Assembly: GCF_037042905.1 (NCBI RefSeq)
Contig: NC_087263.1
Span: 6,510,001-6,574,000, forward strand
Direction of reading: 5' to 3'
Origin: Lytechinus pictus
Lineage: Eukaryota
DNA length: 64,000 bases
The translations under genes were made by a program, and so were the position numbers. Positions 1 to 36,323 of the stretch are shown one piece after another; position 1 is the first letter of the stretch, and the number at the start of each line of letters is the position of its first letter. The notes under the pieces are model-generated. The model saw nothing but the letters and a program-made list of their open reading frames with translations. It had not been told where the DNA came from and did no database searches.

Positions 1-520
1 CATCATTTTGGCGCCCCTCGGTTCGAACATCAATTCGGCGTCCCCCTAGTTCTAAAATCAGTTCGGCTCCCCCTGGTTCCAATATTAATTCGGTGCTCCC
101 TAGTTCTAACATTAATTTTGCGCCCCTATTTTGAACATCAATTTTCGCCCCTAGTTCGAAAATCAATTTGGCGCCTCTAAGTTCGTTTATCAATTTTGTG
201 CCCCCTAGTTTGAACATCATTTCGTTGCTCCCTAGTTCCAACATCAATTCGGCGCCCCCTAGATCGAACATCAGTTCGGTGCCATCTGGTTCGAACCTCA
301 ATTCGGTGCTCCCTAGTTCCAACATCAATTCGGCGCCCCCCTCCTAGTTTGGACATGAATTTGGCGCCCCTAGTTCGAACATCCATTCGGCGTCCCCCTA
401 GCTGTAAAATTAATTTTTCGCCCCCCTATTTTAAACATCAATGTTCGCCCCTATTCGGAACATCAATTCGGCGCCCCTAAGTTCGATTATCAATTTTGTG
501 CCCCCTAGTTCGAACATCAA
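1..520. repeat. Minisatellite, ~27-28 bp unit (consensus ~CTAGTTCGAACATCAATTCGGCGCCCC)
   Basis: Many imperfect tandem copies are visible; ~110-230 recurs at ~410-520, suggesting a ~300-bp higher-order period. Runs off the window start. Confidence 0.9.
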
Positions 521-7115: not shown

Positions 7116-8339
7116 ATGACGGACTACAACTTTTCAACGTTTGAAAACTTTACCGGTGTTAGCAAAAGCGATTTATATGGAATGCCGCATGCTGTGCTGT
7201 GGTACGCGACAGTTCCGTTGTTGCTTACCATAATATCACTTATAACAATCATCGGAAACGCCTTCGTCATTGCAGCGTTCTTCACAGATAAGAGAATAAG
7301 GGATAAGCCATCGAATATTCTCATCCTGAATCTCTCATTCACGGATATACTGATCGGATTAATTATTCTGCCAGTTAATATGATATATTCAACCTTGGAT
7401 GTATGGCCCTTTGGTGAAATCGTTTGCAAAGTGTTTTTGTTCTTGGACTACACCCTTTGCATTGTTTCGGTATGGACAGTGGTGTTAATAAGCATGGATA
7501 GATACTGGTTGGTGAAGAAACAGCTGAAATACGCGAGTTTCCAAACCCGTCGACGCGTGGTCGGATCGCTAGTATGCGTGTGGATTGCTTGCTCAACTTT
7601 GTACGCATTCCTAGTATTCGGTTGGACCGAAATTGCTAAGGACGTTGCACTTGTTGATTACGCCAAAGACTGCGAACTGCAATTTAGTTATAGTGTTCCG
7701 ACAACACTTTCTGTGAATGCTGTAGAGTTCGTTATTCCTTTTGCCATAATAGTTACCCTTAATGTGGTCCTGTACTTCAACATACGGAAGGGGCCCCAGG
7801 GGATCGAGAGACGGAGACTGTCAAGCACGAACGGGCAAACGATCCAGTACATCGCGATTTGTTCGGTCAAGTTACCAAACGATTCTGTCAGGCATCCCCA
7901 TTGCATTGGCACAACCCCAATGACTTCGGCCAGCGCGACTGAAGAATTCAATGCCCCCGATGCCTCCGTCACACTGCGCACGCGCAGTAAGAGAGGTAGA
8001 TTTAACGCCGAGTACAGAAAACAGCTGAAAATGCACGCGCAGCATCGGAAAGCCGCGTTCTTCCTTGCCGTTTTCGTTGGGGTGTTCATGTTTTGCTGGC
8101 TGCCGTACCAGTTCACCAGCATCCGGATGGCATTCTGCGGCGAATGTGTTCTGGAGATAACATGGGATCTCACAAATTATCTGCTATGGTGTAACTCTAC
8201 GATTAACCCGTTTTTATATGCACTTACGAACCTCAGATTCAGACGGAATTTTCTATATTTATATTATAAATATAATAAACTATGTTGTCCTTGGAAGCGC
8301 ACACTAGAACCCAATCGGCCTGACAGCGAGGGTAGCTAG
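7116..8339 (+). CDS. Class A aminergic GPCR, histamine H3/H4-like (407 aa, intronless ORF)
   Basis: Seven TM segments; GN(1.50), NLSFTD, WPFGEIVCK, D3.32 (LDYTLC), ISMDRY, EFVIPF (E5.46), FCWLPY, LLWCNSTINPFLY; N-terminal sequons. Confidence 0.93.
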   Translation: MTDYNFSTFENFTGVSKSDLYGMPHAVLWYATVPLLLTIISLITIIGNAFVIAAFFTDKRIRDKPSNILILNLSFTDILIGLIILPVNMIYSTLDVWPFGEIVCKVFLFLDYTLCIVSVWTVVLISMDRYWLVKKQLKYASFQTRRRVVGSLVCVWIACSTLYAFLVFGWTEIAKDVALVDYAKDCELQFSYSVPTTLSVNAVEFVIPFAIIVTLNVVLYFNIRKGPQGIERRRLSSTNGQTIQYIAICSVKLPNDSVRHPHCIGTTPMTSASATEEFNAPDASVTLRTRSKRGRFNAEYRKQLKMHAQHRKAAFFLAVFVGVFMFCWLPYQFTSIRMAFCGECVLEITWDLTNYLLWCNSTINPFLYALTNLRFRRNFLYLYYKYNKLCCPWKRTLEPNRPDSEGS

Positions 8340-13720: not shown

Positions 13721-13903
13721 TTAGTTATTATTTTCGTTGTTATGGGAACCAGTGGGCGTGGCAATGGCGGATAGTCTGTTGGTATCGACGGTGTTTTGTT
13801 TCCTCTTCGAGTCGTCGCTCCGAAACGCTTTGAGATTGAACGAACTCCGTCGAGAAAACGAATTCCGCCATTCGACTTTCCTACGCTTAAAGGTATTGCG
13901 TAC
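13721..13903 (-). CDS. aGPCR exon 16: helix 8 and C-terminal tail (VRNTFKRRK...NNENNN*)
   Basis: Acceptor ttaatag at 13904; continues HCLLNSE|VR; TAA at 13721-13723. Confidence 0.85.
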   Translation of the reverse strand, partial: VRNTFKRRKVEWRNSFSRRSSFNLKAFRSDDSKRKQNTVDTNRLSAIATPTGSHNNENNN

Positions 13904-16900
13904 CTATTAAGAGCAAAACAGAAACAAGGAAAAAGCAAAGTTAAGAGGAAGACAGTGGTTGTGAGACTTAAATAGCGACAGAGATAGAGAAGGGCGGGGA
14001 CATGGAGGATAGGGAATTATAAGTCTATACACACTTTTTTCTTTTTTTTTCTTGTATTTGACACTTTTTGAGAAAAAAATTAGGAAAAAATCTGATCACT
14101 ATCAAAATGGTTACTTTATCGATAGTGATCACAAACATAATGCAGTACAACAATTATTTAGTAACGATTCATATTGTTCATGTTAAACGGGGTTATTTTG
14201 CAACAGCTGCAGTGTGCTCTCCGTATCATTGATGACAATGAAGGTATTAACAATAAGCAAATATTTGTATACAGTAGACAATAATGACGTAGTCGATTTG
14301 AATAATTTGCATCTTAGCTACCCCCACCTCCCCCCCCCACACACACAAAGGGAAAAGAAGAAAAAGGAGCATATTTAGTCTGCTGTGCAAACCCTTCACT
14401 CGAATGAAGGATTCGAATGTTTAGTTTAAAAGGACATGTGAACTGAAATTCTTCTCGCTGAAATGAAAACAGCAAGTTTAATAAGTGCTAGTCTTGTGTG
14501 AAGACCCACTTCTTGAACAAAGTTTCAATCAGGGTCTGTGCCTGGAGACTAGATGGGAATAGGGGCAAAGAAGAAAAAAAGGGATGAACGTGAAAGATCG
14601 ACAAGGGGGAATCCAAATGGAACATACCTCTGAATTTAAGAGACAATGAAATACGAAAATGAAAAATCCTTGGAGAGAATTGCAGATGAGAAAGAGGTAC
14701 ATGAAGACGAGCGTTGATTGGTCCTGCCACATTATGCCAAATATCCACGTCAAACCCATTACCGGTAGGAGAATCACGCAGGCCTTCACGCCGTGTCTTT
14801 AAAAAGGCAAATATGAAACAATCAAGGATGATTAAGCAGCAGTTACAATTGTTAATAGATGATGATAATTATTAGAAAATGCATCCTACCACCACCTTAC
14901 ACTTTTTAGTTTTTACTTTATATTTTCCTTTTGGTATGCACGTTCACTCTTATAATTATTGAATTGCAATATATACCACTGTTTTTATTTCATATCTGAT
15001 TTTTTTTTACCAGTTGTACTGCTATGAATGTAAACCAATATATTGTATATACACAATTCAGTCTTTTGGCTGCGAAGTGCAGTAATAATAAAACATTTTT
15101 AATTCATTTCAATTCGATAGTACATAGAAACAGATGATCATAATTCAGCCAATATACTCAATGAAATATTGAATGATAATATATTTTACTCATTTATAAA
15201 AATATTGATATCGCATAAAGCATTCCAAACATAATTATGCGGTTAATCATTTGTTCAACTGGGTAAAAAATAAACTCCTGAATCATTATTTGGACTTTGA
15301 GAGAGCAGGAGGAAAAATAGTGAGGAAGACTCATACACCTGCCCATGACGCTCTGTTTGAAATGTAAGCGAGAATGTAGGAGGTTATTATTATCATTATT
15401 ATTGTTGCTGTTATTATTGCTATTTCATTGTTAATATTATTATTATCATTAATAATATTGATATTATTATCATTACTATTATCCTTATGATGATGATTAG
15501 TATTAGTATCATTTATTCTTATTATTTTCTTCCGAGGATCGAAGCAGGGTTGCAGGCACTCTACCACTGAGCCCCTACTGCTGGTATGCAATGGACAAAT
15601 TATGTTCAAAGGCATACTCACCAACAAGTGGGTAAACCTGAAACAAAGACACGTTTACTCACTTTGCCCGGGTGATCCGGTTATTGACAACCGTAGGTCC
15701 GCCAGCAAGCTTAATGATCTCGAACACGACTCTTGAAACGAAGTAGACGTTGAGAGCAATGATGGTCAGAATCGGGACGACGAAGAACCAAATCGAGTCG
15801 TCTTCTCTTCTTAAAAAGCATCTGAAAGAATAGAGGATAACATTTTTTTGGCAAACGAAAAGAGATAAGAAAATGGTCCGTTTAGTCGAGACCCAGCTCG
15901 TTAAAAAAGTATATTTTTCATACTTCTGTTTTCTGATCGAGAACCTAACTTTCCCGGCACAAAAATAAACACGAAATTACATCAGGCATATCATTTTTTT
16001 CAAATTTTTGAAATGTCTATATACATGTATACTATTTCGAAACGCTATTTGAAAATGTTCTCCATATATTTTGTAAAACTGTAGTCACGTAAAGAAAAAG
16101 TATTTTTTCAACGTCACTGGCTCATAGCTGACTATGATTTTTTAAATAATTTGTTTTCTTTTTGAAAAAAGAAAATGGATAGAGTTTGGATAATGGTCAA
16201 ATGTAGGCCGATTAGAAAGGCTGCTATACTCTGCGTAGTCTATTTAGGTTCTTAGTCTACCGCCATCTCGTGGTAAGCAATCGATCTGTAAAACATCATA
16301 ACCATTACATTCCCATTTTCGCCATCGCCGTTGGAATGAGAACTGATGTATCTCTCATTGTAAATACATTCCAATAATCCAATATTTGTGTTCATACTTA
16401 CACAGGATTGTCATGTGTTGTTACGTCATCACCAAGCTTGCATTTATAAAACGCAAGGGTTGCTGACAAAGGAATGATCGGGCATACTAGGATGAAAATA
16501 AAAAAGGTATATTATGTTAAAGGTGAAGATCACCCTGACGGAAAGTTCGGTGTCAAAATAGCAAAATATCGATGAAGGTTCGAGGAAAATCCATCAGAGA
16601 TAAAGAAAGTCATTAGATTTCAAACTTCTTGATTTGTGACGTTACGGGCAGCTGCCCCATATGTTATAAAATATAATATCAATAAATACTTAATTTTTAA
16701 TTTTTCGTGGTGACTCATATCTTTGTTATTTCAGGAGCAGGTGTGAAATGATTTGTCTATTAATATACTGAAGGCACAATAAAAAACATGTTCAATCTTA
16801 TTAGAAAAAGACATTTCATTGATTGTTATACCATCATGAACATTATGTGGGGAAGCTGCTCCCTCGTGACGTCACAGATCAAATAATTACGATTCTAATT

Positions 16901-19900
16901 ACGTTTTCATTCTTTGATGGTTTTTTCTCAAACCTTCATCAATGTTTCATATCACTTGTTTTTCCTATTTTTATAATAAACTTTTTGTCAGGGTGAATTT
17001 CCTTTTCAGGATACATTTACGTTTTTCCCCTATTCTGTGACCCAGTGTATTACTCTTCAGACCTTAAAAAAAACCGAAACACATTAGTACATAAATGATA
17101 TTATAAACGGATGCTTTCACCAGAAAACAACTTATTATGCGAGCACGGCATTCATTTCAGTCGGGTCAGAACATGGTCTGAAATCAAGACTATAACTCGT
17201 CAACCCCGTGTGCAAAGCTAGGCTGCATCCACATTAGGGGGGCGTTTCATCAATATTGTCGTCCCACAAGTTGTCAGATCTGACAATTTTCCTGGATTCT
17301 GATCGGTTGAGAAGCACTATTACTATAGTAACTGTCGGATAAAATAGGACTTGTCGGATAAAACGTCCGACAAGTCCTTTCATGAAACGCTCCCCAGATC
17401 ATGATCGCTCCATGATCAGACACACTGAAGATGAACCTACAATATTAAGTGCTCCATTCAGTTTTGGAGAGAAAGCAATCTTGTCCAATTGTTATGGCAG
17501 TCTTTTATAATCATGAATCAAAGACTCGTCAGCACTTCAAACAACCTAGTGCCTATGGAAAACGGCAATTATGTGGGGCAACTCGTAGATTTGAGTGGCA
17601 AGCTAGTTTACTATCTTCCAACCCGGTAAGCAGTGTCTATGCCCGGGGATTAATGGGAGTAACAAACACGTGCAATGCAAAAGCGCACACAATTTTCCTA
17701 ACGTAAATGATTGAATAAATAAATAAAGAAATAGATAAAAATAAAGAAATAAACAAATAGATAAATAAATAAAATGAATGAATAAATAAATAAATAAATA
17801 AAGGAAAGTACTGATACGAGAAAGGACGATGACGTTCCACGTGACTTACGCCAGCCAATCACAAGATATATCTTAATTCTGCTTCCTGGTTTACTGAAGA
17901 CCACAACGGCCTGTAGAAAAAGATTGACGCCCTCTATCAACATCCAACAAAATGCAGACATGAAGAAATAGTAGAGTAGAGAAGCTTTGACCGTGCACTG
18001 GACCTATATTCATATATCAAAATAAAAAATAAGCAATAAATAGGTAATGATAAAAATAATAATTATAATGATACTAATAACAATTGTAATAATACTAATG
18101 GTAATACGTATATAATAATGATACTGATAATAATAGTAATAATATCTTGTACTCATATTCTTTTTTTTTTCTTTTTTCTTAGCGCTTTATGTCTTTCGTA
18201 TAAAGCGCTTTATAAATGTTATAAATTATTAAGTTTCATAATAATAATAATAATAATGGAAATGATGATGATAATGATAACAATAATAATAACAATACGC
18301 AGTTCCAGTACACTTTGACCAACAGGCAATGGGTTAACAATGCACTGATTTTTCAATATAAACAAAATACAGACATGAATTCCTTTAATAGGCCAATATT
18401 ATAATTTTGATAATTATAATAAAGATAATAATAAAAACAAGAGCAATAATGATAAAAATTACAATGAAAACAATAATAGCGATAATTATAATGATGATTA
18501 TAAAATGAGGATAAAGATAATTACACTTGCTTATATAGCGCTTATAGGGGAAGTTCGCCCTAACAAAATGTTTATTGTACGAATAGCAGAAAAAATTATT
18601 AAAAATATTGGTGTCGGTTTGAGGAAAATCCATCAAAGATTGAAAAAAGTTATTAGAAATCAAAGTTTTTGTTTTGTTACATCATAGACGAGCAGCTACC
18701 CCATATGTTAGGTAATATAGAATGCATGAATTTCAAATTTCCAATGGTTTGTGATGACTTTTTTAAAATTTCCTTCACGAGCGGGTGTGAAATGATTTGT
18801 CTTTTGATGTACTAAATGTACAATAACAACTATTTTCAATTTCCTGAAAAGCGACAATTCATTGACTTTTTACCATTTGATATGTGGGAAAGCTGCTCGC
18901 ATATGACGTCACAAAAAAATTTTAATATATTTTTTTTTCTTGGATAGATTTCCCTCAAACCTTCACCAATATTTTCTAATTTTTTTTTTTTTTCTGTTTT
19001 CACAATAAACTTTTGGTCGGTGTGAAATTCCCCTTTAAGCCTTCCCCTAGGCGCTCTACGGTAATGCAGCATAATTAGTCCTCAAATTGATTCCGGTAAA
19101 ATAGGATCAACCAGACCTGATACTTGGTGGGAGTGTCTAAAAACAGGATCATGATCTGGCCCAGTCCCACGGCGAGAGCCAAGTTGATATGGATCATTAC
19201 CCGGTCTGATTTGAGACTAATAAAGGAAATATAGAAAAGAGCTATCAGGTTAGAGTAAAGAAAATGTTAAACAGCCCCATGTATTCTAAATTCAAGCTCG
19301 CTAAACTTTAAAGAGAATATTGAAAACACTCATGCCTTGGAACCTATCGAAATATGTATTTTTGAGGGCTTGTATTGTTTTCATTTTTGTATTAACGTAT
19401 CGAAATATGTATTTATTGCGTCCATTTTATGTTTTTCTCATAGCTGCCAAAATACCTATTTTCGGGAGTAGAATTTAACCAATATTCGCAGTCCTGAGGG
19501 GGTCGCATTTCCCCCCCGTATTGTTATTCTTAATCGTAGTCGTCTTCCTCTTGAAAATACAGAAACAGATGCCTTTTGTCTTGTTTTTACCAGAGACTTC
19601 ATGAGCACAATCATGGGTTCGTTTAGAGCCGTATCCACACAATTTACAAGGAAGTAGTTTTATATTTCACATTTTTAAACTAAATTTGTAACTGTATAAT
19701 TATTATATGAGGAAGATGTCAGATTAAAGCAGACGATGGTTGTTTCTTGTTCATAGCCGACATTCTGAAGCAAGGGCTTTTAAGCAATAAATCTTTCTTA
19801 TAGGCCTTCTGGCAGGTGTTACCTTTATTTTTTAATCAAGCTGTTGAAATCCACTCAACATAATGGTAATCGTCTGAGTTGAATTGACAAGAAGAATGCA

Positions 19901-22900
19901 AATAAGTTTAGACAAATTCTGACTATTTATAATAGCAATGAGACGTTGATCATTGTAATAGCAATACTTAACCCTAACTCTCCCGGGGTATTTTGATTCT
20001 TGTCCTTCCCGGGGGGGGGGGGGCCATTATGGCCCCCCCTTAAGATCTCGGCCGCCGATCGCGCGAGCGACGCAAAAATTTGCACGCTGGTAGTGTGCGA
20101 TGTAATCTACAAGGCTGTATGGTAAAATTTTCCAAAATAATGAGATTTTATTTTATATGAATTAATTATGCTAATTTATGCATAAATCATACTTTTTGCT
20201 CTAATTCACTAAATAAAGCTCCTAAAGTGCTATTTTTTTGTAAAAATATTCTTTGTAGCATTCTTAACAATCGCATTAAAAAAAAAACTTCAGTTTGGAA
20301 ATCAATTTATTATGTATTTTATTGTTTTATGAATTTTATATGTATTTCTTTGTTTTTTTACTTTGTGTTTTTTATTGTTTTTTCAATGGAAATTGTTCCA
20401 GACTTAATTCTGATCATAAACAAGGCAAAATTAATTAAGTTTAATCAGTAAAAGTAGAAATAATGATACATTTATGAATTTTGGCTAAATACACAATTTG
20501 CATTGGATTTGTACATGAAATCAAGTTTATGAGCAATTTTGGGTCTGACATGTACTTACATAATGTTGCGTAATGTCGTAACCGTGTACCCGGGCGTCAC
20601 AAATTTGGGCTCAAAATTTGCGCGAGACTTGAAAGTAAAAAGTCAGTTAGCGGCGAGGTCAAAAAAATTTGCGCAGCAGATATATCGCGAAAATTGTCGA
20701 GGGGGGGGGGGGGGCATAATGGCCCCCCCGGGAGAATTAGGGTTAAAATAGTATATAATAGAATCATCATTATCAGAATAATCGTTATTCTCACTATCAT
20801 AAGCCTAATTAAAATGCGCTAAAGAACAAATCTTTTAAAAATATCAACAAAATATTAATAAAAAATGATAGAGTGTAAACAATTTTTCTCTAAAATTTAA
20901 TTAGTTGCTAAAAAAATGAGTTGAGCACTTGAATGAAGCCCTTCACTTACCTAAGGATGATGAATGAGAAGATTGTGAAGAAGGCGCCCGCTATAGATAA
21001 TCCGCATCCAATTGACGTAATCACGTTTGCTGCGAGTGTATCGGCGGGAGAAAGCTGCTGACGGTATAACAGGTGAGGGGATAGTAATTATCTTAGTTGG
21101 TAAAATAGGTTTAAAGGTAATCGATACTTTGTATGTCATGTAAACAACACTTAACAAAACATCGATTATGATTATCATTAAATTACAGATAATGGCTAAA
21201 TTATAGTTTTACATTCCAATGCTCTGGTTGGCCACCTGATTGACGTCATGTATTTATCATGCATCAATGATCACCATTCTCATTTGAAGACCATGGAAGA
21301 TTACATTTGTGACAACTAAATACTTGAATTAAAGGTCATACCTTTAGATAATCCTAGCATACATGGGAGTATGAAGATCCCGATTTAAACTTACTCCATT
21401 GCAATGTTGGAATTCGTTATTTATTCTTGAACGAATAGATTGAACGTGTGTAAGTTCTACAGAGTAGCCGATGGTTTACATTGTTGACTATTATTCAAGA
21501 GGAACATACAAATCCCCATAATTAAATTCATTCTTTATAAGGAATCTTAAAAAAGTTTTTTAAAACACAATACTAGATTCAATCAGAGGCTGACGAAAGT
21601 GGTTGTGGCATAATAAACCCTCAAAACTCCCATACACACACTCACTAATCACTTATCACTAAAACATAATTCAACACCTCAGCCCAGGCGGTGATTTCAT
21701 ACTTTTTGCAGCAGTCACTGGATAGGACGTTTCACCTGTACGTATCTTGGAAAAGGGCTGATTAAACCAGATGAAAAAAAAAACCCGAAAAGACTAACGT
21801 GATATTCATTTATTTGCATCAGGACAGCAAAGTTAGTAAGATGATCGCAGGCGCACTCGACTACCGACGAGTTGACGAATTCAGGCCAGCATCCTTCCTG
21901 AGACCAACCGCTGAAATAAATGAATAAAAATCATTAATCGTACCGATGATATGATGTTTTATATTTTTCACTTTTTTATTGGCCTTTAAATAGTATCTAA
22001 TTTCCACACTAGTAAAATGATACACGTGATCGTGAATATTTGATAATTTAAAAACAATTATGGCGTGCACCGAGCAAACAATGATTGACGTAAAACCTGA
22101 AAAAATGAGTCGAAATATAAATTATAGATTACATACCGTGTGTTGGATACAGATGGATAGAAAACACAGACAAAGAGTAAATCTTTGAGTGTTAATGCAT
22201 TCATTTCCAACAAAAGTTTATTTCCAAGTAATTTCCCAATTTTCGACGCAAACCTCGCGTCTTCGTCATGGATACAAAACTCACAATGACAAGATATATA
22301 TATCACAATTGGTTCGGTCAAATACCGTGAGTAAATACGTAAAATATAAAAATGTTAACAGGAGTGTAGCTCTCAAAAAGGAAAGGTAAGGTCACATTCT
22401 TCGCCAGTGACCATGGTGTGACAAAAAAAGGGTATTTAATCCTTTGTATTTGCTTGAATAGTTATATGCATCCCCTCATGAATATGCAATGAGCAAGCTG
22501 ATTATGGCATATCCTAATTCGGTTGTATATTATTAAATGATACATTATATATTTAATCATTGTCCGATTAGAGTGAAATGAAATATTGTACGAGATATTC
22601 ATTACTGCAACTTATTTCGTTAACATGAAACATTTAATACATACATGCATGAAAATATCAAATACAAAATTGTGATTTCTTGAAAATATTAAAGTATAGG
22701 GACGTTGAAAATGAAGCATTTAATACACACATGCATGAAAATATCAAATACAAAATTGTGATTTCTTGAGAAAAATTAAAGTATAGGGACATGACATAAA
22801 CAGCCAACCTAATGAATATACGTCGTGCATATACGGTATATGCAACTGTTTTCACAAAAATATTGCTAAACTTTAATTTATAATTAAACTTTGTTACATG

Positions 22901-25900: not shown

Positions 25901-28900
25901 TGTGTACCATATTGTTCTTTCTAGAAAGGATTGTTCTAAACTGTGATAAGCTCGGGACAAAAACCAGGGGAGGGAGCGAGTAATGAGTTCGATGCTTAAA
26001 AGGGGGGAACTGGAAAGTGTTTCTGAATTAGATGCGTAAACATCGATGTGGGAAAAAAAAGTGTATCCCATGAGTGTGTTTCTCAGATATGCTTATGTTT
26101 TGTTTTTAGAAATATTTCAAGAGTCACATTGAAATGTTATTCGATAGCAAAACAAGAAAATCACAATTATAAACAACTTAAATTGTGCAGGAATTATAAT
26201 AACAATCTCTACTTAGTTTTGCAGAGGCAAAGGGAACATTTTGTGTGTGTAGCTCGATCCCGTTTTATTTCTTTCTTATTTTGATAGGTGAAATAATACT
26301 CTCTAAATGGAAAGAACTAATCTGGGCTCCGTAACACCAAGAATAGCGATCAATCGCTAAATGAACTGACCAATCAATACGAATGTTACACGTGCATTTG
26401 GTTTAAAATACTGACCAGGGACAAATCAGTGCGGTTCTTTCATATTTGCAATCCATCGCAAACCTTTGTGTTACGGAGCCCAGCAGATCCCAAATCACAC
26501 TCCTCTCTGAGTGAGACGAGGGACCAGTCATTTTGGAGTGGGTTTTACATCTTTTGAGAGTGCATTATAGCTCTTTCTGGAGTGAACAGTGTATGTTTTT
26601 AGACATTTTCAATCCAGAAGGAGCTGTAATGCACTCTTCCATTCCAGAACGACTGGTCTCTCGTCTCAGTCTGAGAATAGTGTGATAGGGGCCAGATTAG
26701 CTTATTTGCATTTAGCGTGTAGCATGATAGCATGACCATGACTACTCATTTAGCACGCATGGTTTATTACTATATACATACTCACCAATTTTTGCATAGG
26801 AAACACCATGCCGACAGGGGAGGGAAGTTTTAGTTCTGAGGCCACTGAGGGGTATAGGCTCAGGCTAAGAACCTGGCTGCCGACCATCTCCCGGTCACCA
26901 GATGGGTCCAAGGCCCTTGATATGAGGAAAAAAATAATCATGAACTCGAAAGAGCTACTAGATTGGCGATCGACCCGATAAAGACTTGATGGCTTTGCTT
27001 ATAACTCTTTCGTGTATTCCTGAAAAGAAGACAAAATCCTTGTGGAAAACTCGTTTAAACTTTCGTGACCAATATATGAATCATTTCATAAATTCTTTAA
27101 CAATTAAGAGCTTATACCAAAACAAGAGAGAAGATATGGAAAATTTGGAAATGGCAAATCAGTCGGCCTACTTTTTTTATCCATCCCACCTCGCCCCCTC
27201 CTTCCTGTGGTTTTGAATTTGCGAGAATAACATATTATTTTGAAAATGGTCTCATTATTTCATTCAGAATGAAATGAGGAACCGATTTAAAAAAACAGAT
27301 CGGCGATCTCGATCAATAAAACAAAACTTCAGTTCGTCCATAAGAATCAAGCAAGAAAGTATAGAAAAACATTATATGTGCCACTAAAGGGTAAAGAGAG
27401 ATTGTAAAACTTACTCGGAATCATTAGAAGTTGAACAATTATCGATTCTTTCCCCGAGATTCCGAAAAACAATCGATATTATCGCCTGGGTTTCCAGTTC
27501 TTGAAGAATCTCCATGCTTATTAGACCCCTCGTCTTCGGCTGGGTCGAGTTGGCGTTGCTTGGTATCGAAATTACTGTAGATGGATCGACACCGGACGAG
27601 TTGATCCTTTTTATTTCTATCACTGTTGCACAAAGGATACAAAAAAACATCGCTATCACTGAGGTCCCTTATTAATGATATTCTGAAACGTGTTTACTTA
27701 ATTAACATATATATATATATAAATATGTATATATATACATGTATATATAAACGTTCCGGGCTCAAGGCATGCTACGCATGCTAAGGACGGTATTAACAAA
27801 GTATTTTATTTAAAGCAGCGAAAATCCCTGTCCCAATATGACGTCGAATCCACCAAACCAAACATCAACATCTTGCACTATTCTAAGGTTAGTAATTCTT
27901 TTTTTATATATCAACTGTTTGATTTATTCAATCCAAGTTATTCACATATTTAAAAAATGTTGTTACTTTATGGCCATTGGAATTTTATTTATTTTTAGCC
28001 AAAAGTACACTTTCCCTAAGAAATCTATTTATACACACCAACTACATGAACTATTATGATAAATAATGTTGTAATGACCCTGTGAACTATACGTATCTTT
28101 AATCATACAGAATCAGAAAAACAGAAAGTCAAGAAGAGCCGGTAGGTATAAAACAATCAAGAATGTAACATGATCTATTGCACCCATGGGGAAATTTTGA
28201 ACTTTTTTTAATCAATTCACTATTTTCGAGGAAAAATATCTGAAAGAGAATGAATGATTAATGTAATTTAAAACTAAGATAGATTAAATGTTAATATGAC
28301 AAGAATAAATCATTATTATCTTACTAAAATGCTTGGGTGAATTCTTGTAAAAGTTATTAGTTTTTTAGAAAAATTTTTGAACAAAAATTGCTTTTCTCAT
28401 TTTAGAATTTTTTTTCACTTATCAGTCCACCCTCTTTTCCGTAATTGCATTTTTTTGTAAATGAGTTGACATTGAGTACATTAAAAAAAGAAAAATACAA
28501 ATACATTCCTCTTTTCATTATTATGTCCCATTATGCGAATTATTCTATAACACAATTGCCTTTTCGATTGATAATGAGAGTATGATTATGATTTTTAGTA
28601 GTTAGCTTTTGAGAACAATGTAATAACTAGAAAAACTATACATTAATGTAGGGCCGGTGTATCACGGGGAGACCCCCCCCCCCCCCCCAACAGAAGGTAA
28701 ATCGAATTGTGAAAAAGGGAAGAGACGAAATGGGAACAGGCAGGGAAGAATAAAAAAATTCAAGCAAGAAGACTGTCCAAAAAGATGTCCTTGTCCTATA
28801 ACTAATTGAAAGTCCTTTTATTCTTATGAGAAAATGTAATATTTTGGGGTATAAAACTAACTTTTCACAACATAAAATGAAAGAAACGTTTTATATAGAA

Positions 28901-30095
28901 ATATATATTTATCATGTTAGCAAATTTCTCTCACCTGCAACTCCAAGATCTATATGCACGTCTGGTGCTCCTTGGGCTATCATTTTGGCGGCAAGTTCTA
29001 CTGCAAGATGTTCAATTTCCATGGCAATGTTGGTCGGTCGATTAAGAGTCTAAACAAGATATATTTGTATATTATATAAATAGATGATGCACTGCATTCA
29101 TACGTGATTACACATTCTAAAACGAAATTTCATCACAATGTCATTGAGCGTTCGCCAAAAATGATTTTATTTTCTTGTTTGGATCACTATTGTGATCATT
29201 TAGAAATCATTTTATTAAGTTGATAGCATAAACAATCAGTTCAGAGATCGAACGGTCCAAGCTTCAAACCTCTATTTAACTCTGAATTGGCAAAATAAAA
29301 AGAGACAAAGGAATGAAGGATATATTGTTGTGCATGGTACGATATTTAAACGATATTTAAGATTTAAATAATGAAAGCAGAACTTACGGTATTATTCCCA
29401 CAGTAATTTTCGTCTTGTAATCCAGCCAATCTTTCCTGAAACTGTTTAACAAAAACAAACCATTTGAATTACTAACATTTGTTTTTTTTTAACTATGTGA
29501 ACTACTAACATTTCTTATTTTTTGCGTAAGAATAAATGATTTAATAAATCATTGCACAGCTTAATTACATTTCTTCTTGGAAAGGCAATCGACAAAGAAA
29601 CAAGAGGTGCCGTGGCCGAGTGGTGTCAGGCACCTGGCTATACATGCCAATGAGCAAGGCATTTAATCTACATTGATCTTTTATCCTGCTTTCAAATAAA
29701 TGGAAATGCTGTTATTGGTAACTAGGTGTGCACTTGTTAAAAAAAACAAGGAAGACTACATGTCTGACTTGATTTTGAAGGGATGCAGGTATTCTGTCAC
29801 ACACCAATTAAATAGATGTTGAATTAAGTATTTAGGAACTTTATCCAGAGACTATAAGCATATGACTGAAAAAAATTATCAAGAGAAATTAGAAAATAAT
29901 AAAAAGAAGATCAGGTAGGTCATACTGTCATAAATTCCTTCAGCGCAAGAAAAATAAACGTATTTTGTTTGCAACTGTTAATATAATTTTGTAATTGTTG
30001 CTTAGCTGGTTGTTATGTATTATTTTTTTCTGTATTGAAAATGGGACACCATTTCGAAAAATCCATGTAACACAACACACCATATATATACATAA

Positions 30096-30129
<34 letters not shown>

Positions 30130-33100
30130 ATATATAAATGTGTGAAGTTATACATGTACTACAGCTTTGGCAACTCTTTTATATTTAAATATTGTGTGAA
30201 TAAATATTGAATAAATTGTGTGAATAAATATATATATATATATATAAATCTCTCTCCGACCATGTTAAATTCATTTAGCTACATTCTATGAAAAAATACA
30301 TTTCCCAGTATATCATGGTGTATCAAAGTCTACACTGTAGGACTATACATCCGGCATGAAGTATTCAACGAATAACAGCGTTTGGCAACGATATTTTCAA
30401 ATTTGTTTAGCGTTGAAGTTGATACCGACCCTCATTTCTTCCAAATCGTTTCGATTTCATGTTCATTTCAATGTCTTCAATGTCATTCGACAAATCCCTG
30501 CATAACCTTCAGTGCTTTATCATAATGAAACACGGTAAACGAAACATGATCTCTCGATAATATTGAAAGAAAGGTCACAGAAGAAACATGAAAATAAAAA
30601 GAGTACTTTGCTTTTAGGAGACGAACTCTGACGGATAAGAACAAACACAACAAGCAGTTTGTTTTCCATTTTCCCTTATACGTAAAATACCGTATCATAT
30701 TTTAATCCTGCATCCTGTTTAGATCTATCCTTTTAATAATTCCACGAAAAGAAACAAGCATTCAGTAAAACGAATCAAACAGTCTGTATCCGAAAGGTGA
30801 ATTAGTATGATTGTGTTGAAAATCATTCCTTTAATGAAAGCGACTGAATCAAAGAGGGTCAAAACTGAAAAAAAATCAATAAATTTTTATTTTTTACCAA
30901 CAAAAAAACATTTATGTGACCTAATAAATGCTTAGAGGTGATACATCTGTGTCGAAATAATTGTTAGATAGCAATGCCCTGATCTCAGTGATATGCCTAT
31001 TGAAAAAACTATTGTTTATTAATGGATTTTTTTATTGCCGGTGTATTCAATACATGGAATTCAAAGAATAGGAAATGAAAATACTTTACCTGGTATTCTG
31101 GGGAATTTTCTGTGAGGAAAGAGGGAGGTATAAAATATTAATACAAAATCCATGGCAACGGAAAGCAGATAAAAACAATTAGATATCTACCATCAAAATA
31201 ACAAATAAAATGTTAACTGCAATATCGTCAAAAAGTCAAAACAACATCATCGACTGTGAAAAAAATTGTGACAATAATCATCATAATCCCAGCTAATTTC
31301 AGCAAATGTATGAGGAGTGTTAACGAAAAGGCGTAGGGGAGCATTTTTATCAAATTTTTAAAATCCTCAGCATGTAGATGGAAATAATTATAGGTTATTA
31401 GAATGTTTCAGATGTAAAGAGTTAAAGTATAAATATGAAATCCAAATCGATTGATTTGTGACGTATCTTAGCATTACATTTTGATAACCCTTATTCTTCG
31501 GGTTGGTCTTTGAGGCTACGCAGGAGACTTCAATCCAAGTTCAACTATACCCCCGTGTATCATATCATTACAAATTTATGGCATTTTAAAGGATCCTAGA
31601 AGCTTGGGTTTTTTCTTGAGGCTATATACAAAACATGCTTGAATGAGTTTCGTTCGACTATTAAATATGATTTGCCCGACCTCGGTATATTTTGCTTATA
31701 TTGTCAGTCGACATAGCAACGCAACATTGGCATGATCATTACGAGAATATCCACTTTGTTATTTCGCCGACAGCCATTATAATCGTAAAATTATTACAGT
31801 TATTACAATGTTGTGATTTTTTTTTTATAAAGCAAACCATCATAGGAATATATATACATGTACATTACTATTGTGAAAAATTACATGTACAGCAATTTTG
31901 ACAAGTTATTCTAGGCCTATTTACTTATGCTGTAAATGTGGTCTCACCATTTTTTAAGGGAAGAGAGCTCTGGGAACTTCAATCAACTTATAACATGTAT
32001 AATGCAATAGTACAAATTATTATCGTATATAATCCCACTTTATCTATTAGTTGATGCGTATATGGGCTATTAAAGACTCGCATATATAGGCCTATATGAT
32101 ATGCAATACGTTTATAGCACTATAATCGATTTGGATGAAAGGCTTTTAAGGTATTTCCGGATTCAAATTAATACTGCCGTTCTACGCAAGCCATTAGATG
32201 TAATTAACAGAAGGCCTATAAGTGTGTATGTCAATATACGTGACAAGGTCAAGTCCGTTATACTGGAATATAGATTGATATTCAAGGTACCTAAATTAAT
32301 AGAAGTGTGAGTTGTGGTCGGGTGTGTGTGTGAGTGTGTGTATTCAACTCGTCTATTCATTTTCCAAGGATACTATTGGTATTATGATTTTTTGTTATTA
32401 CTTTAAGTTTAGTTTTTCTGTTTTTATTGTATTTTGAATAATGTTTGATAATGTTATTAAAACATATTTTGTGATCGAAACATTTAAATGTCGCTCCATG
32501 TGTAACCATGCTTTTATTCGCATTATGCAAGTGTTCAAAGATTTGGAGATAGATGCTTAATAAAAAAATGGCGAAATTGACACTTAAATTACAGTAATGT
32601 CTACTATTACCATATTATTATTATTATTATTATTGCCATGAATATCATTATTATTATTATCATTAATATCATTACTATTATTATCATTATCACTTCTATT
32701 ACTTCTATCATCATATCATTATTGTAACCCTACTTAATATTATTACCATTATCATATTATAAACTTTTATTGAGGTAAACGAAGTTGATGAGATAGTTTC
32801 AATATTACTATATTCGACACATGTTTAGGTTGCCACGGTATACTTTTGTCTCGAAAGTAAAACAATGTTTGTAATCCACATTGAGCTGGACGAGGATCTT
32901 TTGCATAAGATGAGAGACGAATTATTTCGATGGAGATAGTACTGCTTGAATTTAAACATTGATATTCTGACTTTAAATTGTTTGTATTTGCCTCCCTTTA
33001 ATCAGTTCGTGTAAATACAAGGTCATGATTTTTAGCCTGGACTAAAATAATTGTTTAACATCTTTAAGCACACCTTACTTTACATTCAAGAAGAGGCCGG

Positions 33101-36100
33101 AAATACTTTTTTTTGTAAACTGCATCAGATTTGAGCCAATTATACTGCCAGCACCTTTGTCAACTTGGGATTATATTTTCAGAGGAAGAATATGAAGAGC
33201 TAAAATACTTGTTGAATTCTAGGATATCCCAATTATAAAACTGCTGTATCCTAAAACGTGCAATATTGATATGAAGTTTGAAAACCTACCTTCGACGGGC
33301 AAGCATGTTGGGTATTTTGCAGGAACATCCAAGGCAGCTTCCATGGCATACGCATTCGAACCATTTCTACCCATTTTCCAAGAATATAGTGCAACTTGAA
33401 AAGAGGCCTCTGGGTTCTTGTGTGACACGCAGTGCAGACCCGGCTCAAGTTCGTAAGAGAGGGCGCAATAGGTCGTTCCGTTTACCATTGATATTACACG
33501 GCTAACTTTCAGTTCACTTCCATTTACCAGGAACCCTTGGATATCCCTGCAATTTATGATGACGTCCATGATGTTTTCGTTCTCGAAGGGAAGCACATCA
33601 ACGAGGAGATTTCGCTTAGATTCGTTTAGAGGAGGAACGTTAAACATACTTGGATCGCTCCGGATGCCATTAGCATTACTCTCATTGGAACCAATCATAT
33701 ATTTAACGATTGAAATTGACTCATTTGCAGTGATCTCAATAACCTGATCGAACGCCCTTTGGTCATCAAATGAAAAATGTTGACCATGAACGGTAAACCA
33801 ATTTTCCCAGTCAAGACCACTGACTGTAACGTTTGCGACTGTTCCTTCCGGTGCAAAAATCTTGAGTAGGTAGTTGAACCTGTCGATTCTGGCGAAAGGC
33901 GCAACGGCAAAGTGGTTTCCCCAAAACCTTTGTGGCACCATTTGCTCCAAGATATATCCCCCCGTCCCCTTCTCGAAAAAGCTAGTCATCCCACCTGCAA
34001 CGACGGAAACATTCTTCTCAGATTTCACAAATGTTCCTGTCAGGTCCACCTTCTTGCCTTTACAGAACATTGATTCAAACCTCCACAATACAACAGTAGC
34101 ATTGTCTGTGCTAGCACTTTCCAGTGGATCACAATTAAATTGATTCCCCCATGGGTTGTAGATATGAATAAAGTTGTTATCTGCCAAGGATGTTATAGTA
34201 AACAGAGTGAGTTTGTTTTTGTTATGCGCTATGATATGGCGGGTTCCGGTGGATTCTGATGGTATAACATGGAAGGCAGCAACTGGCCGAAGGAACTCCA
34301 AGTACGCTACGACACCGATCCTTCGTGTAGAATTGACAATAACGGTGGCGTTTTTGTAGTCGGGAAGTTGATGGGTCCCAAGGCTCAGATTCACCCTTTC
34401 TACATGCCCTGGTTGGAGAATAAACGTTCTCTCGAAATTTGTCCTGGGAATGGCTACATGAATCGATGAATTCTTGAGATCCCCGGAGATTATATCAATC
34501 ACACAGGGTTTGTTCTCCTTTTGCCTTGATTTGCGGTCCGCCAAGAAGCTGAAGGCGAAGAGCTTACCCCCGTAATTTGGTCCCTTTTCAGCTCCAACTA
34601 AACAGAGTAGGCATACACAAAGGACCTGTAGGGCAATTCGGACAAGACACAGACACAATTGAGCATTGTATTACAGCGAAGACTTTCTTAACAAAACTAG
34701 TCATTTAATTATGAAGATTATACTGTTTCAAGTAGTATTGTGTCATACCCTTTGCGTCTGTCCCGTGTATTTGTTCTTACTGTCAAAATTGTGCATTTAC
34801 GATGATGATATTCTGTATAATTAAGAACTCAACTAACTACTTGAAAAAAACGGAAGTAACGCATACTGAGATGAGCTAGTAAGGTTGCTCTATATTCTGT
34901 ATTCTTCTCCTCTATACACACCGTTGTCATGATTGTGAGCAGCAGAAACAATACATTATATTTTACAACGCCTTTATATGAAATAGCCACCCTGGACACG
35001 CTGGACGGACAAATCTGAACGAAGCCTGCACTGTAATTTCTGGGGGGTTAAAACTGACTCCAGTCCTAGAGATGAAATATAACTGTCAGTGTCAAATATA
35101 AACGTAATGAACATTCCTGTTTTCTGGAAGCCAAACATGTCAAAATTGTTCACAGTCATGGTATGTTTCTTTTGTTTACTGAGCTCTTTCCCAAATTATT
35201 TAATGGTGAAGACAGTTATCTTATTTATCATTCCCAGACAGATAAGGATGATTTGAAAGTCAAATGAGCTATATGTCCCAAATGGCTATTCATTGTTAAA
35301 GGTCAAGTCCACCCCAGAAAAATGTTGATTTGAATAAAAAGAGAACAATCAAACAAGCATAACCCTGAAAATTTCATCAAAATTGCAAAAAAAATAAGAA
35401 AGTTATGGAATTTTAAAGTTTCGCTTATTTTTCACAAAACTGTGATATGCACAATTAGGTGAGTCAGTCGATGATGTCTATCACTCACTATTTCTTTTGT
35501 TTTTTATTGTTTGAATGATACAATTTTTCATTTTTTACAGATTTGACAATAAGGACCAACTTGACTGAACCATATAGTATAAAACAATGCTATCTACACA
35601 TGTTCAGGGAGGAATTAATCATTGTAGCACCTGACAATGAGGAGACAATAAGAATATTTCGTATTTTATGTAATAAAATACAAAATAAATAGTGAGTGGA
35701 TGACGTCATCAGTCTCCTCATTTGCATACCTACCAGGATGTGAATCGAACTGTTTTGTGAAATTAAGCAAAACTTTAAAATGTCATATCTTTTTTTATTT
35801 TACATCCGATTTTGATGAAATTTTCAGTGTTATGCTTTTTGGATTTGTCTCTTTTTATTCAAATAATTTTTTGTTGGGGTGGACTTGTCCTTTAAATCAC
35901 AACTTTAGACCAGGGTTTAAATTAAACGCGACTTCAGAATACGGACCAGAGTGAAATAACTGGTATGGTCTTCTATGAACACCATTCAACACCTCTCTCT
36001 CTCTCTATGCAGTGTAAAAAAACGAAGTGCTAATTTAGCACTTACAGTGCTTGTATTGTGACTGCACTACGATTGCTGATTTTCTAGTTCAAATTTAAAC

Positions 36101-36323
36101 TAGAAAATCAGCACTCGTAGTGCAGTCACTATACAAGCACTGTAAGTGCTAAATTAGCACTTCATTTTTTTACAGTGTAACTCTCTCTTGTTCTCTGTGT
36201 GAAGCCTAGATTGATTCAGATAAATCAAGATCAAGCAAAGATAGCAGATCGGCATTATGGAAATAAAATATAGCATATCCTTACCAGTGTGAGGGAAATG
36301 ACAAAATGTAAAAGCTTTTCCAT
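13721..36323 (-). CDS. Adhesion GPCR: signal peptide, FCGBP-N (IgGFc-binding) domain, GAIN/GPS, secretin-type 7TM; 16 coding exons, ~1008 aa
   Basis: join(36323-36285, 34625-33290, 31109-31090, 29441-29388, 29049-28935, 27622-27415, 26915-26786, 23420-23365, 21910-21799, 21057-20951, 19216-19117, 18003-17850, 16486-16402, 15821-15663, 14796-14628, 13903-13721). All introns are GT-AG, phases are consistent, total 3027 nt, no internal stop. Extra phase-symmetric exons cannot be excluded. Confidence 0.85.
14628..14796 (-). CDS. aGPCR exon 15: TM6-TM7
   Basis: VKACVILLPVMGLTWIFG...YLFLICNSLQGFFIFVFHCLLNSE, a typical adhesion 7TM signature; donor gtatgt. Confidence 0.93.
15663..15821 (-). CDS. 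aGPCR exon 14: ECL2-TM5
   Basis: CFLRREDDSIWFFVVPILTIIALNVYFVSRVV; acceptor ctttcag, donor gtgagt. Confidence 0.9.
16402..16486 (-). CDS. aGPCR exon 13: TM4 and ECL2
   Basis: (L)CPIIPLSATLAFY...; acceptor catcctag, donor gtaagt. Confidence 0.85.
16521..17003. mobile_element. Kolobok-type MITE (same family as 18546-19034)
   Basis: TTAA-AGGTGAAGATCACCCTGAC ... GTCAGGGTGAATTTCCT; internal similarity to 18546-19034. Confidence 0.7.
17237..17395. mobile_element. Short MITE (Harbinger-like)
   Basis: TIR GGGGGGCGTTTCAT / ATGAAACGCTCCCC. Confidence 0.65.
17850..18003 (-). CDS. aGPCR exon 12: TM3 to start of TM4
   Basis: VQCTVKASLLYYFFMSAFCWMLIEGVNLF...YLVIGW; donor gtaagt. Confidence 0.92.
18546..19034. 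mobile_element. Kolobok-type MITE
   Basis: AGGGGAAGTTCGCCC ... GTGAAATTCCCCT-TTAA. Confidence 0.7.
19117..19216 (-). CDS. aGPCR exon 11: TM2
   Basis: LKSDRVMIHINLALAVGLGQIMILF matches the adhesion IHxNL motif; acceptor tttattag; weak donor gtctgg. Confidence 0.85.
19972..20742. mobile_element. piggyBac-type MITE
   Basis: TTAA TSDs (19968-19971, 20743-20746); TIR CCCTAACTCTCCCGGGG / CCCCGGGAGAATTAGGG. Confidence 0.85.
20951..21057 (-). CDS. aGPCR exon 10: TM1
   Basis: (Q)LSPADTLAANVITSIGCGLSIAGAFFTIFSF; CAGCAG tandem acceptor; donor gtaagt. Confidence 0.9.
21799..21910 (-). CDS. aGPCR exon 9: GPS motif
   Basis: GWSQEGCW...VECACDHLTNFAVLM contains the canonical HL|T cleavage site and a Stachel-like TNFAVLM. 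Confidence 0.95.
22631..22790. repeat. Direct duplication of a ~73-bp unit
   Basis: CATTTAATACA(T/C)ACATGCATGAAAATATCAAATACAAAATTGTGATTTCTTG...AAGTATAGGGAC occurs twice. Confidence 0.8.
23365..23420 (-). CDS. aGPCR exon 8: start of GPS (CSFWN)
   Basis: PPRFADGLALCSFWNHTLR; donor gtaagt; acceptor caacag is less certain. Confidence 0.8.
23950..24400 (-). mobile_element. Highly degenerate L1/Tx1-like RT remnant
   Basis: Minus-strand KLVYFADD at ~24090-24115 with weak flanking RT-like motifs; many stops. Confidence 0.35.
26297..26721. mobile_element. MITE with a second MITE (26322-26483) inserted in its left terminal repeat
   Basis: Inner TIR CTGGGCTCCGTAACAC / GTGTTACGGAGCCCAG. Outer arms CTAAATGGAAAGAACTAATCTG..ATCACACT..GAGACGAG..ACCAGTC versus GACTGGT..CTCGTCTC..AGTGTGAT..CAGATTAG..CATTTAG. 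Confidence 0.65.
26786..26915 (-). CDS. aGPCR exon 7: GAIN subdomain B (MVGSQVLSLSL)
   Basis: ALDPSGDREMVGSQVLSLSLYP...LPSPVGMVF resembles the GAIN 'VNSxVISxS...LxxPVxIxF' pattern; phase-2 acceptor tcaag, donor gtgagt. Confidence 0.8.
27415..27622 (-). CDS. aGPCR exon 6: GAIN (IISIVFRNLG)
   Basis: Resembles the GAIN 'vvsvxYxnLg' strand; acceptor gcaacag, donor gtaagt. Confidence 0.8.
28935..29049 (-). CDS. aGPCR exon 5: GAIN helical part
   Basis: TLNRPTNIAMEIEHLAVELAAKM...; acceptor tgtttag, donor gtgaga. Confidence 0.75.
29388..29441 (-). CDS. aGPCR exon 4
   Basis: (FQ)ERLAGLQDENYCGNNT; two in-frame acceptors 6 nt apart; donor gtaagt. Confidence 0.7.
29606..29740 (+). mobile_element. tRNA-derived SINE, internally deleted (same family as 63175-63350)
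   Basis: A-box GTGGCCGAGTGG; shared body CTTTTATCCTGC..TCAAATAAATGGAAATGC..GGTGTGCACTT. Confidence 0.7.
31090..31109 (-). CDS. aGPCR exon 3: 20-nt microexon (ENSPEYQ)
   Basis: Strong pyrimidine tract cctccctctttcctcacag, donor gtaaag; converts phase 1 to phase 0 as the model requires. Confidence 0.72.
33290..34625 (-). CDS. aGPCR exon 2: end of signal peptide and FCGBP N-terminal (IgGFc_binding) domain
   Basis: GKLFAFSFL, IVNSTRRIGVVAY, VIPSESTGTRH, DLTGTFVKSEKNVSVVAG, LEQMVPQRFWG, ITANESISIVKY, DPSMFNVPP follow the FCGBP-N motif order; acceptor ccctacag, donor gtaggt. Confidence 0.88.
35300..35891. mobile_element. Kolobok-type MITE (same family as 50379-53630, opposite orientation)
   Basis: TTAA TSDs; TIR AGGTCAAGTCCACCCCA / TGGGGTGGACTTGTCCT. 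Confidence 0.85.
36010..36178. repeat. Near-perfect ~170-bp palindromic MITE (CACTG-type ends)
   Basis: ~80-bp arms GAAGTGCTAATTTAGCACTTACAGTGCTTGTA...CTAGTT and their reverse complement, with a tiny loop. Confidence 0.85.
36285..36323 (-). CDS. aGPCR exon 1: start codon and signal peptide N-half (MEKLLHFVISLTL)
   Basis: ACCATGG Kozak context; 13 codons; donor gtaagg; joins in phase 0 to VLCVCLLCLVGA to form a signal peptide. Confidence 0.8.

Follow-up and report, generated by a model that had tools for sequence, protein, structure and literature searches.

Does the stretch of the Lytechinus pictus genome analyzed here (NCBI RefSeq assembly GCF_037042905.1, contig NC_087263.1, positions 6,510,001 to 6,574,000; 64,000 nucleotides, hereafter the window) encode a free-standing FCGBP-N (IgGFc-binding) protein, or does this domain serve as the ectodomain of a G-protein-coupled receptor of the adhesion class (aGPCR)? 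The window is of eukaryotic composition, with a GC content of about 35% and zero N. It contains a 479-aa open reading frame (ORF) at 33219-34658 on the minus strand, which the initial annotation of the sequence had read as the second exon of an aGPCR gene, and whose presence we confirmed. We consider it highly likely that the locus holds one intact gene, LOC129282580, for an echinoid-specific aGPCR of 1008 aa. In this protein a signal peptide and an FCGBP-N module are followed by a short linker that evolves fast, a compact predicted GAIN domain whose GPS motif is canonical, and a class-B2 seven-transmembrane (7TM) domain that is closest to ADGRD1 and ADGRL. By analogy with its family, the receptor would be self-cleaving and activated by a tethered agonist.

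The gene was rebuilt independently of the initial annotation. An exhaustive HMMER search with the 479-aa ORF retrieved a 1045-aa protein of Diadema antillarum and a 90%-identity cluster containing the Strongylocentrotus purpuratus proteins XP_030843896/7 (1013 and 1012 aa). XP_030843896.1 served as the guide, and its tblastn high-scoring segment pairs are colinear from 34595 to 13742. Among the GT/GC-AG pairs, we chose the junctions that keep the frame and maximize similarity to the guide. The resulting gene lies on the minus strand (36323-13721), from an ATG at 36323 to a stop codon at 13723-13721, and comprises 16 exons separated exclusively by GT-AG introns, with a coding sequence (CDS) of 3027 nt. 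The same exon number, splice-site type and CDS length had been given at the outset, and the junctions, including 33290>31109 and 31090>29441, agree as well. Without the 20-nt micro-exon at 31109-31090 the frame would be lost, since exon 2 leaves in phase 1 and exon 4 is entered in phase 0, and the S. purpuratus protein aligns ungapped across it.

Two acceptor sites offered alternatives. For exon 7, an acceptor at 26954 (CDS of 3066 nt) adds 13 hydrophobic residues that are not found in S. purpuratus, and it was dropped for 26915. The latter has the better polypyrimidine tract, scores highest against both guides, brings the total to exactly 3027 nt, and was later seen to agree with RefSeq. The in-frame AGs at 26954/26957 would insert 13-14 mostly hydrophobic residues (SFEFMIIFFLISR) into GAIN subdomain B; they give poorer scores and are unused by RefSeq. 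The acceptor of exon 10 is a NAGNAG tandem (CAG/CAG) at 21057/21054, whose alternatives correspond to RefSeq isoform X1, which contains Q691, and isoform X2, which lacks it, and the second-best exon-10 junction in our rebuild was that of isoform X2. Residue Q691 lies in the linker between the tethered agonist (Stachel) and the first transmembrane helix (TM1), 13 residues past the cleavage site, and S. purpuratus likewise has two isoforms one residue apart. A tblastn search of the window with the model, made for tandem paralogs, finds no further copy, the other large ORFs there being rhodopsin-type GPCRs. Introns of the aGPCR gene contain low-complexity and microsatellite sequence, namely (TTA)n, (AATA)n, (AT)n and repeats of a 24-bp unit, at 15384-15526, 17714-17802, 30082-30136 and 32619-32687, and these runs appear as spurious Asn/Ile-rich ORFs when all six frames are listed.

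Translation of the model gives a protein with 100% identity to the L. pictus RefSeq entry XP_054774439.2, named "uncharacterized protein LOC129282580 isoform X1"; the gene is thus a re-derivation from raw sequence of an automatic NCBI prediction and not a new discovery. Orthologs are annotated for L. variegatus, for S. purpuratus and for two species of Diadema, always without a proper name or under a wrong one, and the sequences and automatic domain annotation are public for five echinoids. The labels of the S. purpuratus ortholog conflict (ADGRG6 in RefSeq, ADGRD1 in UniRef); both are automatic best-hit names, and neither fits the domain content. In the literature we searched, which did not extend to the supplementary architecture list of Lang et al. 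2016, no paper was found that pairs IgGFc with an aGPCR or treats the domain in sea-urchin aGPCRs, nor was any found that names a gene or protein identifier of the locus or its orthologs. A 2026 consortium review mentions neither IgGFc nor FCGBP. In line with the earlier view that FCGBP-N lies outside the ectodomain repertoire of human aGPCRs, the literature covered on aGPCRs does not contain the domain. The protein is an undescribed receptor of a familiar pattern, that of a lineage-specific N-terminal module, and not a new kind, and our understanding of how aGPCRs work is unchanged by it.

The N-terminus of the protein is formed by a hydrophobic leader of 25 residues, encoded partly by exon 1 and partly by exon 2, and then by the FCGBP-N module, which at about 430 aa is the only adhesion domain. 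Exon 2 matches the Pfam profile IgGFc_binding (PF17517) with E=3.6e-27 and 95.8 bits (cut-off 25.6), and the exhaustive HMMER search with the ORF collected 752 relatives at E<=0.001. The near-invariant positions of a 107-sequence FCGBP-N family alignment are present in the L. pictus module. With this alignment as input, AlphaFold2 predicted exon 2 to form an all-beta structure of about 30 strands with no disordered segment (predicted local distance difference test, pLDDT, 89.2; predicted template modeling score 0.91). Altogether, residues 1-690 contain 21 N-glycosylation sequons. To our knowledge echinoderms, sea urchins included, have no immunoglobulins or IgG, and for this reason "IgG Fc" is no candidate ligand for the urchin receptor.

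The FCGBP_N domain was defined by Lang et al. 2016 as nearly always N-terminal and as occurring in metazoans from ctenophores on and in gliding bacteria (PMC4948705). In invertebrates, echinoderms included, it is found without VWD repeats, and apart from a 1997 report on IgG-Fc no ligand has been established for it (PMC4948705). According to a 2024 study, no gene of the vertebrate cluster is functionally annotated except the Bombina peptidyl-aminoacyl L/D-isomerase and the frog glue proteins, in which a single-exon-encoded FCGBP_N domain was proposed as a mechanical unit (PMC11237159).

Behind this exon, the intact GPS (HL/TNFAVLM) and the adhesion-type 7TM domain that had been noticed in the raw sequence were both recovered. 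The sequence CACDHLTNFAVLMQ is found in the open stretch 21718-21930, the cleavage triad sits 20 residues upstream of TM1, and matches to Pfam 7tm_2 lie in the same-strand open stretches 17698-17961 and 14529-14789. The identical RefSeq protein carries a precomputed PF00002 match together with PF17517 and GPS, and the S. purpuratus and Diadema orthologs combine PF17517 with GPS (E=2e-13 and 2e-12) and 7tm_2 (E=2e-48 and 8e-45). The 7TM half has seven hydrophobic segments. The positions that are invariant, or nearly so, in an alignment of 42 aGPCR sequences are all retained: four Cys, two Trp, H-L-T-N-F-A, WML.EG in TM3, P..G.TW in TM6, and NSLQG in TM7. The tethered-agonist core TNFAVLMQINEY fits the Stachel consensus T-x-F-A-[VI]-L-M, and its T, N, F and A are invariant in that alignment.

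We base the assignment of a GAIN domain on a predicted structure and on an alignment in which residues ~466-690 match the GAIN regions of those latrophilin-like receptors in which Pfam recognizes GAIN. The fold was judged by a helical subdomain A and a 13-strand subdomain B enclosing the last strand. In the AlphaFold2 model of residues 459-965 (pLDDT 82.3) there are two long and two short helices, about 12 strands, the last of which is TNFAVLMQI, and seven transmembrane helices. The top Foldseek match of this GAIN+7TM model is full-length inactive CD97 (GAIN+7TM; E=8.5e-20); for the 7TM domain a Foldseek superposition on ADGRD1 gives a template modeling (TM) score of 0.85, a root-mean-square deviation of 2.8 A and 35% identity. 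The closest solved receptors in a PDB sequence search are ADGRD1 (3e-59) and ADGRL3 (2e-54). Pfam scans of the orthologs returned only IgGFc_binding, GPS, 7tm_2 and a weak Frizzled overlap, with no PTX, LamG, RBL, OLF, HormR, CUB or SEA. Since it lacks the ectodomain modules of ADGRD (PTX/LamG), ADGRL (RBL+OLF+HormR) and ADGRG6 (CUB+PTX+SEA), the urchin receptor is not an ortholog of any of them.

The gene is conserved among echinoids in structure as well as in sequence. At the L. variegatus locus, length and AG/GT borders are unchanged for 16 of 16 exons, the micro-exon among them, and the assembled CDS translates exactly to XP_041453098.1, which differs from the L. pictus protein at 43 of 1008 residues. 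In Diadema antillarum a single exon likewise encodes the FCGBP-N domain (aa 30-460), and no fewer than 12 of 15 intron positions are shared with Lytechinus. Amino acid identity to S. purpuratus is 62% for FCGBP-N and 86% for the 7TM domain; the respective values for Diadema are 43% and 66%. We calculated the ratio of nonsynonymous to synonymous substitution rates (dN/dS) between L. pictus and L. variegatus by the Nei-Gojobori method (dS ~0.14). It is 0.14 for the whole CDS, 0.16 for the FCGBP-N exon (bootstrap 95% interval 0.10-0.26), 0.20 for the linker plus GAIN, and 0 for the Stachel plus 7TM, with 0 nonsynonymous versus 25 synonymous differences. Every part of the gene is under purifying selection. 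These low values indicate that the gene is functional and that its ectodomain is constrained, though less than the 7TM domain. The linker around the micro-exon (31090-31109, 33290-33300 and 29420-29441; residues 457-468) is a substitution hot spot, with 6 of 12 residues differing between the two Lytechinus species, and the Diadema counterpart of the 20-nt micro-exon has 78 nt.

As had been supposed, the receptor is lineage-specific: in our database surveys it is confined to echinoids. Of the top 150 relatives retrieved for the FCGBP-N exon from 1.84 billion cluster representatives, echinoid proteins alone match the GPS-7TM half as well. A search with the full-length S. purpuratus protein found PF17517+GPS+7tm_2 only in L. 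pictus, Diadema setosum and D. antillarum, and the score falls from ~990 to 256 bits at receptors with other ectodomains, including a discoidin-bearing sea-star receptor. When only the FCGBP-N half was used as a query, the combined architecture was again seen in L. pictus, D. setosum and D. antillarum only, and a profile of five orthologs agrees. Orthologs of this architecture occur in Lytechinus, Strongylocentrotus and Diadema, with one gene per species, while the surveys, in which cidaroids are not represented, did not find it in other echinoderm classes. The presence of orthologs in both lineages implies that the fusion predates the split of Diadematoida and Camarodonta. Outside receptors, the most similar FCGBP-N domains belong to amphioxus, brittle star, sea star, pearl oyster, and environmental or metagenome sequences. 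They are only 20-28% identical, and thus no donor can be named.

With regard to origin, exon shuffling had been suggested by the location of the whole domain on one exon. That location was confirmed, for Diadema too, but strict shuffling of a symmetric cassette was rejected: exon 2 has phases 0 and 1, its 1336 nt are not a multiple of three, and it encodes half of the signal peptide. A better fit, we infer, is the joining of a 5' unit, consisting of signal peptide plus FCGBP-N, to a GAIN-7TM gene, with the micro-exon bridging the phases. This would most likely have taken place in the echinoid stem, with an ADGRD/L-like gene as the recipient. The gene provides a clean, dated example of ectodomain renewal in aGPCRs, as it is single-copy and under purifying selection from Diadematoida to Camarodonta.

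Several observations weigh against this reading of the locus or limit it. Older S. purpuratus annotation had two genes here, one for 'latrophilin-2' with GPS+7tm_2, a name that does not fit the ortholog's domain content either, and one for an IgGFc_binding protein labeled uncharacterized. When transcript support was looked for, the only non-RefSeq contigs found (Logan) were of genomic type, with intron on both sides of exon 2. The 454-aa Logan proteins that cluster with the S. purpuratus ortholog belong here, since their contig (SRR28370586) reads through the exon-2 donor and shows splice-site conservation only; the 90% clusters contain no full-length transcript-derived protein. Of the Pfam domains expected by the initial annotation, IgGFc_binding and 7tm_2 were found in exons of the window, and these two together with GPS in the orthologs, but GAIN (PF16489) has no match in the orthologs. 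The GAIN region is only ~225 aa long, and its subdomain A has 2-3 helices in the predicted model versus the six of the type structures (PMC3321182). A Foldseek search with the FCGBP-N model found nothing but multi-beta-sandwich arrays of a generic kind (MG domains of C3/alpha-2-macroglobulin, Bap, FN3 chains) at a TM score of 0.16 or less, so that no binding function can be read from it, and a PDB sequence search with the module gave nothing meaningful (best E=0.68). The FCGBP-N fold is without PDB precedent, and structure therefore offers no functional clue.

The split annotation and the Logan contigs, in which a spliced transcript was not found, would suit a locus with two products: a secreted FCGBP-N protein of ~470 aa, made by read-through of exon 2 to the stop at 33219, and a separate GAIN-7TM receptor, with the fused model being a prediction chimera or a minor isoform. 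The ORF does run 22 codons beyond the donor before that stop. However, all of the four taxa compared (L. pictus, L. variegatus, a Strongylocentrotus-like genomic contig and Diadema) retain the phase-1 G/GT donor of exon 2, whereas their read-through tails are unrelated (GRFSNFISIL..., GRFSIFDIKI..., GKHRILKYMT... and GIHS*, respectively). This combination argues for a true intron and against a conserved secreted isoform. Moreover, in L. variegatus the frame-restoring micro-exon is of unchanged length and has the same splice sites, the old 'latrophilin-2' model itself starts inside exon 2 and continues through exons 3-4, current RefSeq models join the two halves in five of five species, and no separate signal-peptide exon is seen for the GAIN half. 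In addition, the two RefSeq isoforms that differ only at the NAGNAG site may hint at RNA support. We regard two separate products as quite unlikely, although a minor intron-retaining secreted isoform may be made. That the locus is a decaying pseudogene, or an annotation artifact of a repeat-rich region, has practically no probability. The low-complexity introns are all that speaks for it, and it is ruled out by the selection data and the ortholog structure: the 1008-codon frame is intact, dN/dS is low overall with a 7TM domain free of any amino acid change, and single-copy orthologs with conserved introns extend from Camarodonta to Diadematoida.

For the fused receptor we propose the following mode of action, modeled on the aGPCR family. 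Autoproteolysis in the endoplasmic reticulum at L677/T678 would yield a non-covalent heterodimer of N-terminal fragment (NTF) and C-terminal fragment at the cell surface. The FCGBP-N module, predicted to be heavily N-glycosylated, would bind an extracellular partner, most plausibly a glycan-rich matrix, mucus or another surface. A pull on the NTF, or its removal, would expose the tethered agonist, which may in turn activate the 7TM domain and, through it, a heterotrimeric G protein. The lack of any change in the Stachel plus 7TM between the Lytechinus species supports an agonist-receptor interface in use, and the single copy together with the dN/dS of the FCGBP-N exon argues against fast-diversifying immune recognition and for a conserved physiological partner. 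A single receptor might also work without cleavage or a tethered agonist, by conformational coupling between GAIN and 7TM, or act mainly in adhesion. Some aGPCRs with an apparently intact GPS cleave poorly or not at all, BAI3 was uncleaved in the crystal (PMC3321182), sequence is no certain predictor of cleavage, and GAIN subdomain A appears reduced in the predicted model. Against this, none of the residues that define a cleavable GPS departs from the canonical form (H-L/T, two disulfide pairs, two Trp), the Stachel core agrees with the family consensus TNFAVLM, and both Lytechinus species have the same amino acids throughout the Stachel and 7TM; we consider an uncleaved receptor unlikely.

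Very unlikely, in our view, is a catalytic FCGBP-N module, or one that acts as a structural, force-bearing spacer, in place of an adhesive or ligand-binding one. The frog-skin peptidyl-aminoacyl L/D-isomerase is a homolog of the domain, and for the domain in frog glue proteins a mechanical function, rigid or sacrificial, was proposed (PMC11237159), with no ligand established for the domain beyond the 1997 report (PMC4948705). However, the family has no defined catalytic residues by which a catalytic role could be scored, the sole N-terminal module of an aGPCR is normally ligand-binding or anchoring, and a mechanical role is compatible with the mode of action proposed above. In a bolder version of that proposal, which we hold to be doubtful, FCGBP-N would truly bind a ligand or bear force as an anchor, its target being a glycan-rich layer (the hyaline layer, or mucus of the gut or epidermis) or the surfaces of microbes, and GAIN and Stachel would convert its engagement into a G-protein signal. 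If true, this would be the first signaling read-out for FCGBP_N and would define a new echinoid-specific aGPCR family with environmental or mucosal sensing. The domain is widespread and ancient (from ctenophores to vertebrates, and in gliding bacteria) and without established function. The receptor offers a tractable deorphanizing assay for it, and L. pictus is a genetically tractable urchin.

The coordinates of the exons and of other features of the window are collected in Table 1. Three rhodopsin-family GPCRs flank the aGPCR gene, with histamine H3 and muscarinic/5-HT1 receptors as best PDB matches (E ~1e-44). The downstream pair are paralogs with 42% identity, and by their sequence the three genes look like a small local cluster of aminergic-type receptors. 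The mobile-element remnants include a reverse-transcriptase fragment (RVT_1, E=1.4e-33) and an ORF with weak transposase-like matches (DUF4371/DUF4096). Around 50-52 kb, where the GC skew is strongly negative, lies a 347-aa ORF with a sub-threshold GIY-YIG match.

Table 1. Exons of the aGPCR gene LOC129282580 and other features of the window (positions in the window; ECL, extracellular loop; ICL, intracellular loop).
Feature	Position	Strand	Length	Content
Exon 1	36285..36323	-	39 nt	Start codon and first 13 signal-peptide residues (MEKLLHFVISLTL); donor GTAAGG; N-terminus as in RefSeq XP_054774439.2
Exon 2	33290..34625	-	1336 nt	Phase 0 in, 1 out; remainder of signal peptide and entire FCGBP-N/IgGFc_binding module, aa 14-458
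Pfam IgGFc_binding profile match	33384..34277	-		ORF residues 128-425; profile positions 2-296 of 297
Exon 3	31090..31109	-	20 nt	Micro-exon, linker; length and AG/GT borders identical in L. variegatus
Exon 4	29388..29441	-	54 nt	Linker, then start of GAIN helical subdomain
Exon 5	28935..29049	-	115 nt	Helix of GAIN subdomain A
Exon 6	27415..27622	-	208 nt	Strands of GAIN subdomain B
Exon 7	26786..26915	-	130 nt	GAIN subdomain B
Exon 8	23365..23420	-	56 nt	Start of GPS motif (first Cys, first Trp)
Exon 9	21799..21910	-	112 nt	GPS core (W, C, CxC); predicted cleavage site H676-L677/T678 at 21843-21835; tethered-agonist core TNFAVLMQINEY
Exon 10	20951..21057	-	107 nt	Stachel-TM1 linker and TM1
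Exon 11	19117..19216	-	100 nt	TM2
Exon 12	17850..18003	-	154 nt	TM3; Pfam 7tm_2 profile positions 89-125
Exon 13	16402..16486	-	85 nt	TM4 and ECL2
Exon 14	15663..15821	-	159 nt	TM5 and ICL3
Exon 15	14628..14796	-	169 nt	TM6 (LLPVMGLTW) and TM7 (NSLQGFFIF); Pfam 7tm_2 profile positions 205-250
Exon 16	13721..13903	-	183 nt	Cytoplasmic tail, Ser/Arg-rich; stop codon
Intronless rhodopsin-family GPCR gene	7116-8339	+	407 aa	Pfam 7tm_1, E ~1e-50
Intronless rhodopsin-family GPCR gene	54226-55563	-	445 aa	Pfam 7tm_1, E ~1e-50
Intronless rhodopsin-family GPCR gene	60026-61345	-	439 aa	Pfam 7tm_1, E ~1e-50
Mobile-element remnant	3886-4512	-		
Mobile-element remnant	2971-3483	+		
Mobile-element remnant	50740-51783	+		
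Tandem array	1-520			27-bp (54-bp) GC-rich unit, ~19 copies, 70% identity, negative GC skew

Among known receptors, ADGRD1 (GPR133, family V) and the latrophilins ADGRL1-3 (family I) share with the urchin receptor the TNFAVLM core, PxxGxTW in TM6 and NSLQG in TM7. However, ADGRD has pentraxin/LamG and ADGRL has RBL/olfactomedin/HormR modules, while the urchin receptor has none of these and carries FCGBP-N as its sole module; its GAIN subdomain A is also much shorter than in ADGRD1 and the latrophilins. With FCGBP and other PF17517 proteins it shares a full-length FCGBP_N domain that follows the signal peptide at the extreme N-terminus and is encoded by a single exon (PMC4948705; PMC11237159). 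Unlike FCGBP proper, it has no VWD-C8-TIL repeats (no VWD, C8 or TIL match in the window ORF or the orthologs), and it is predicted to be anchored in the membrane by its GAIN-7TM part rather than secreted. Lineage-specific aGPCR N-termini are documented in invertebrate deuterostomes, for example the Kringle, Somatomedin B, SRCR, C-type lectin and LDLa modules of amphioxus (PMC2246102). These amphioxus receptors and the urchin receptor alike combine a conserved GAIN-7TM chassis with an N-terminal module not present in mammalian aGPCRs (PMC2246102). In contrast to the amphioxus case, where FCGBP_N is not among the modules reported, the urchin receptor is single-copy and conserved across echinoids, with no recent expansion.

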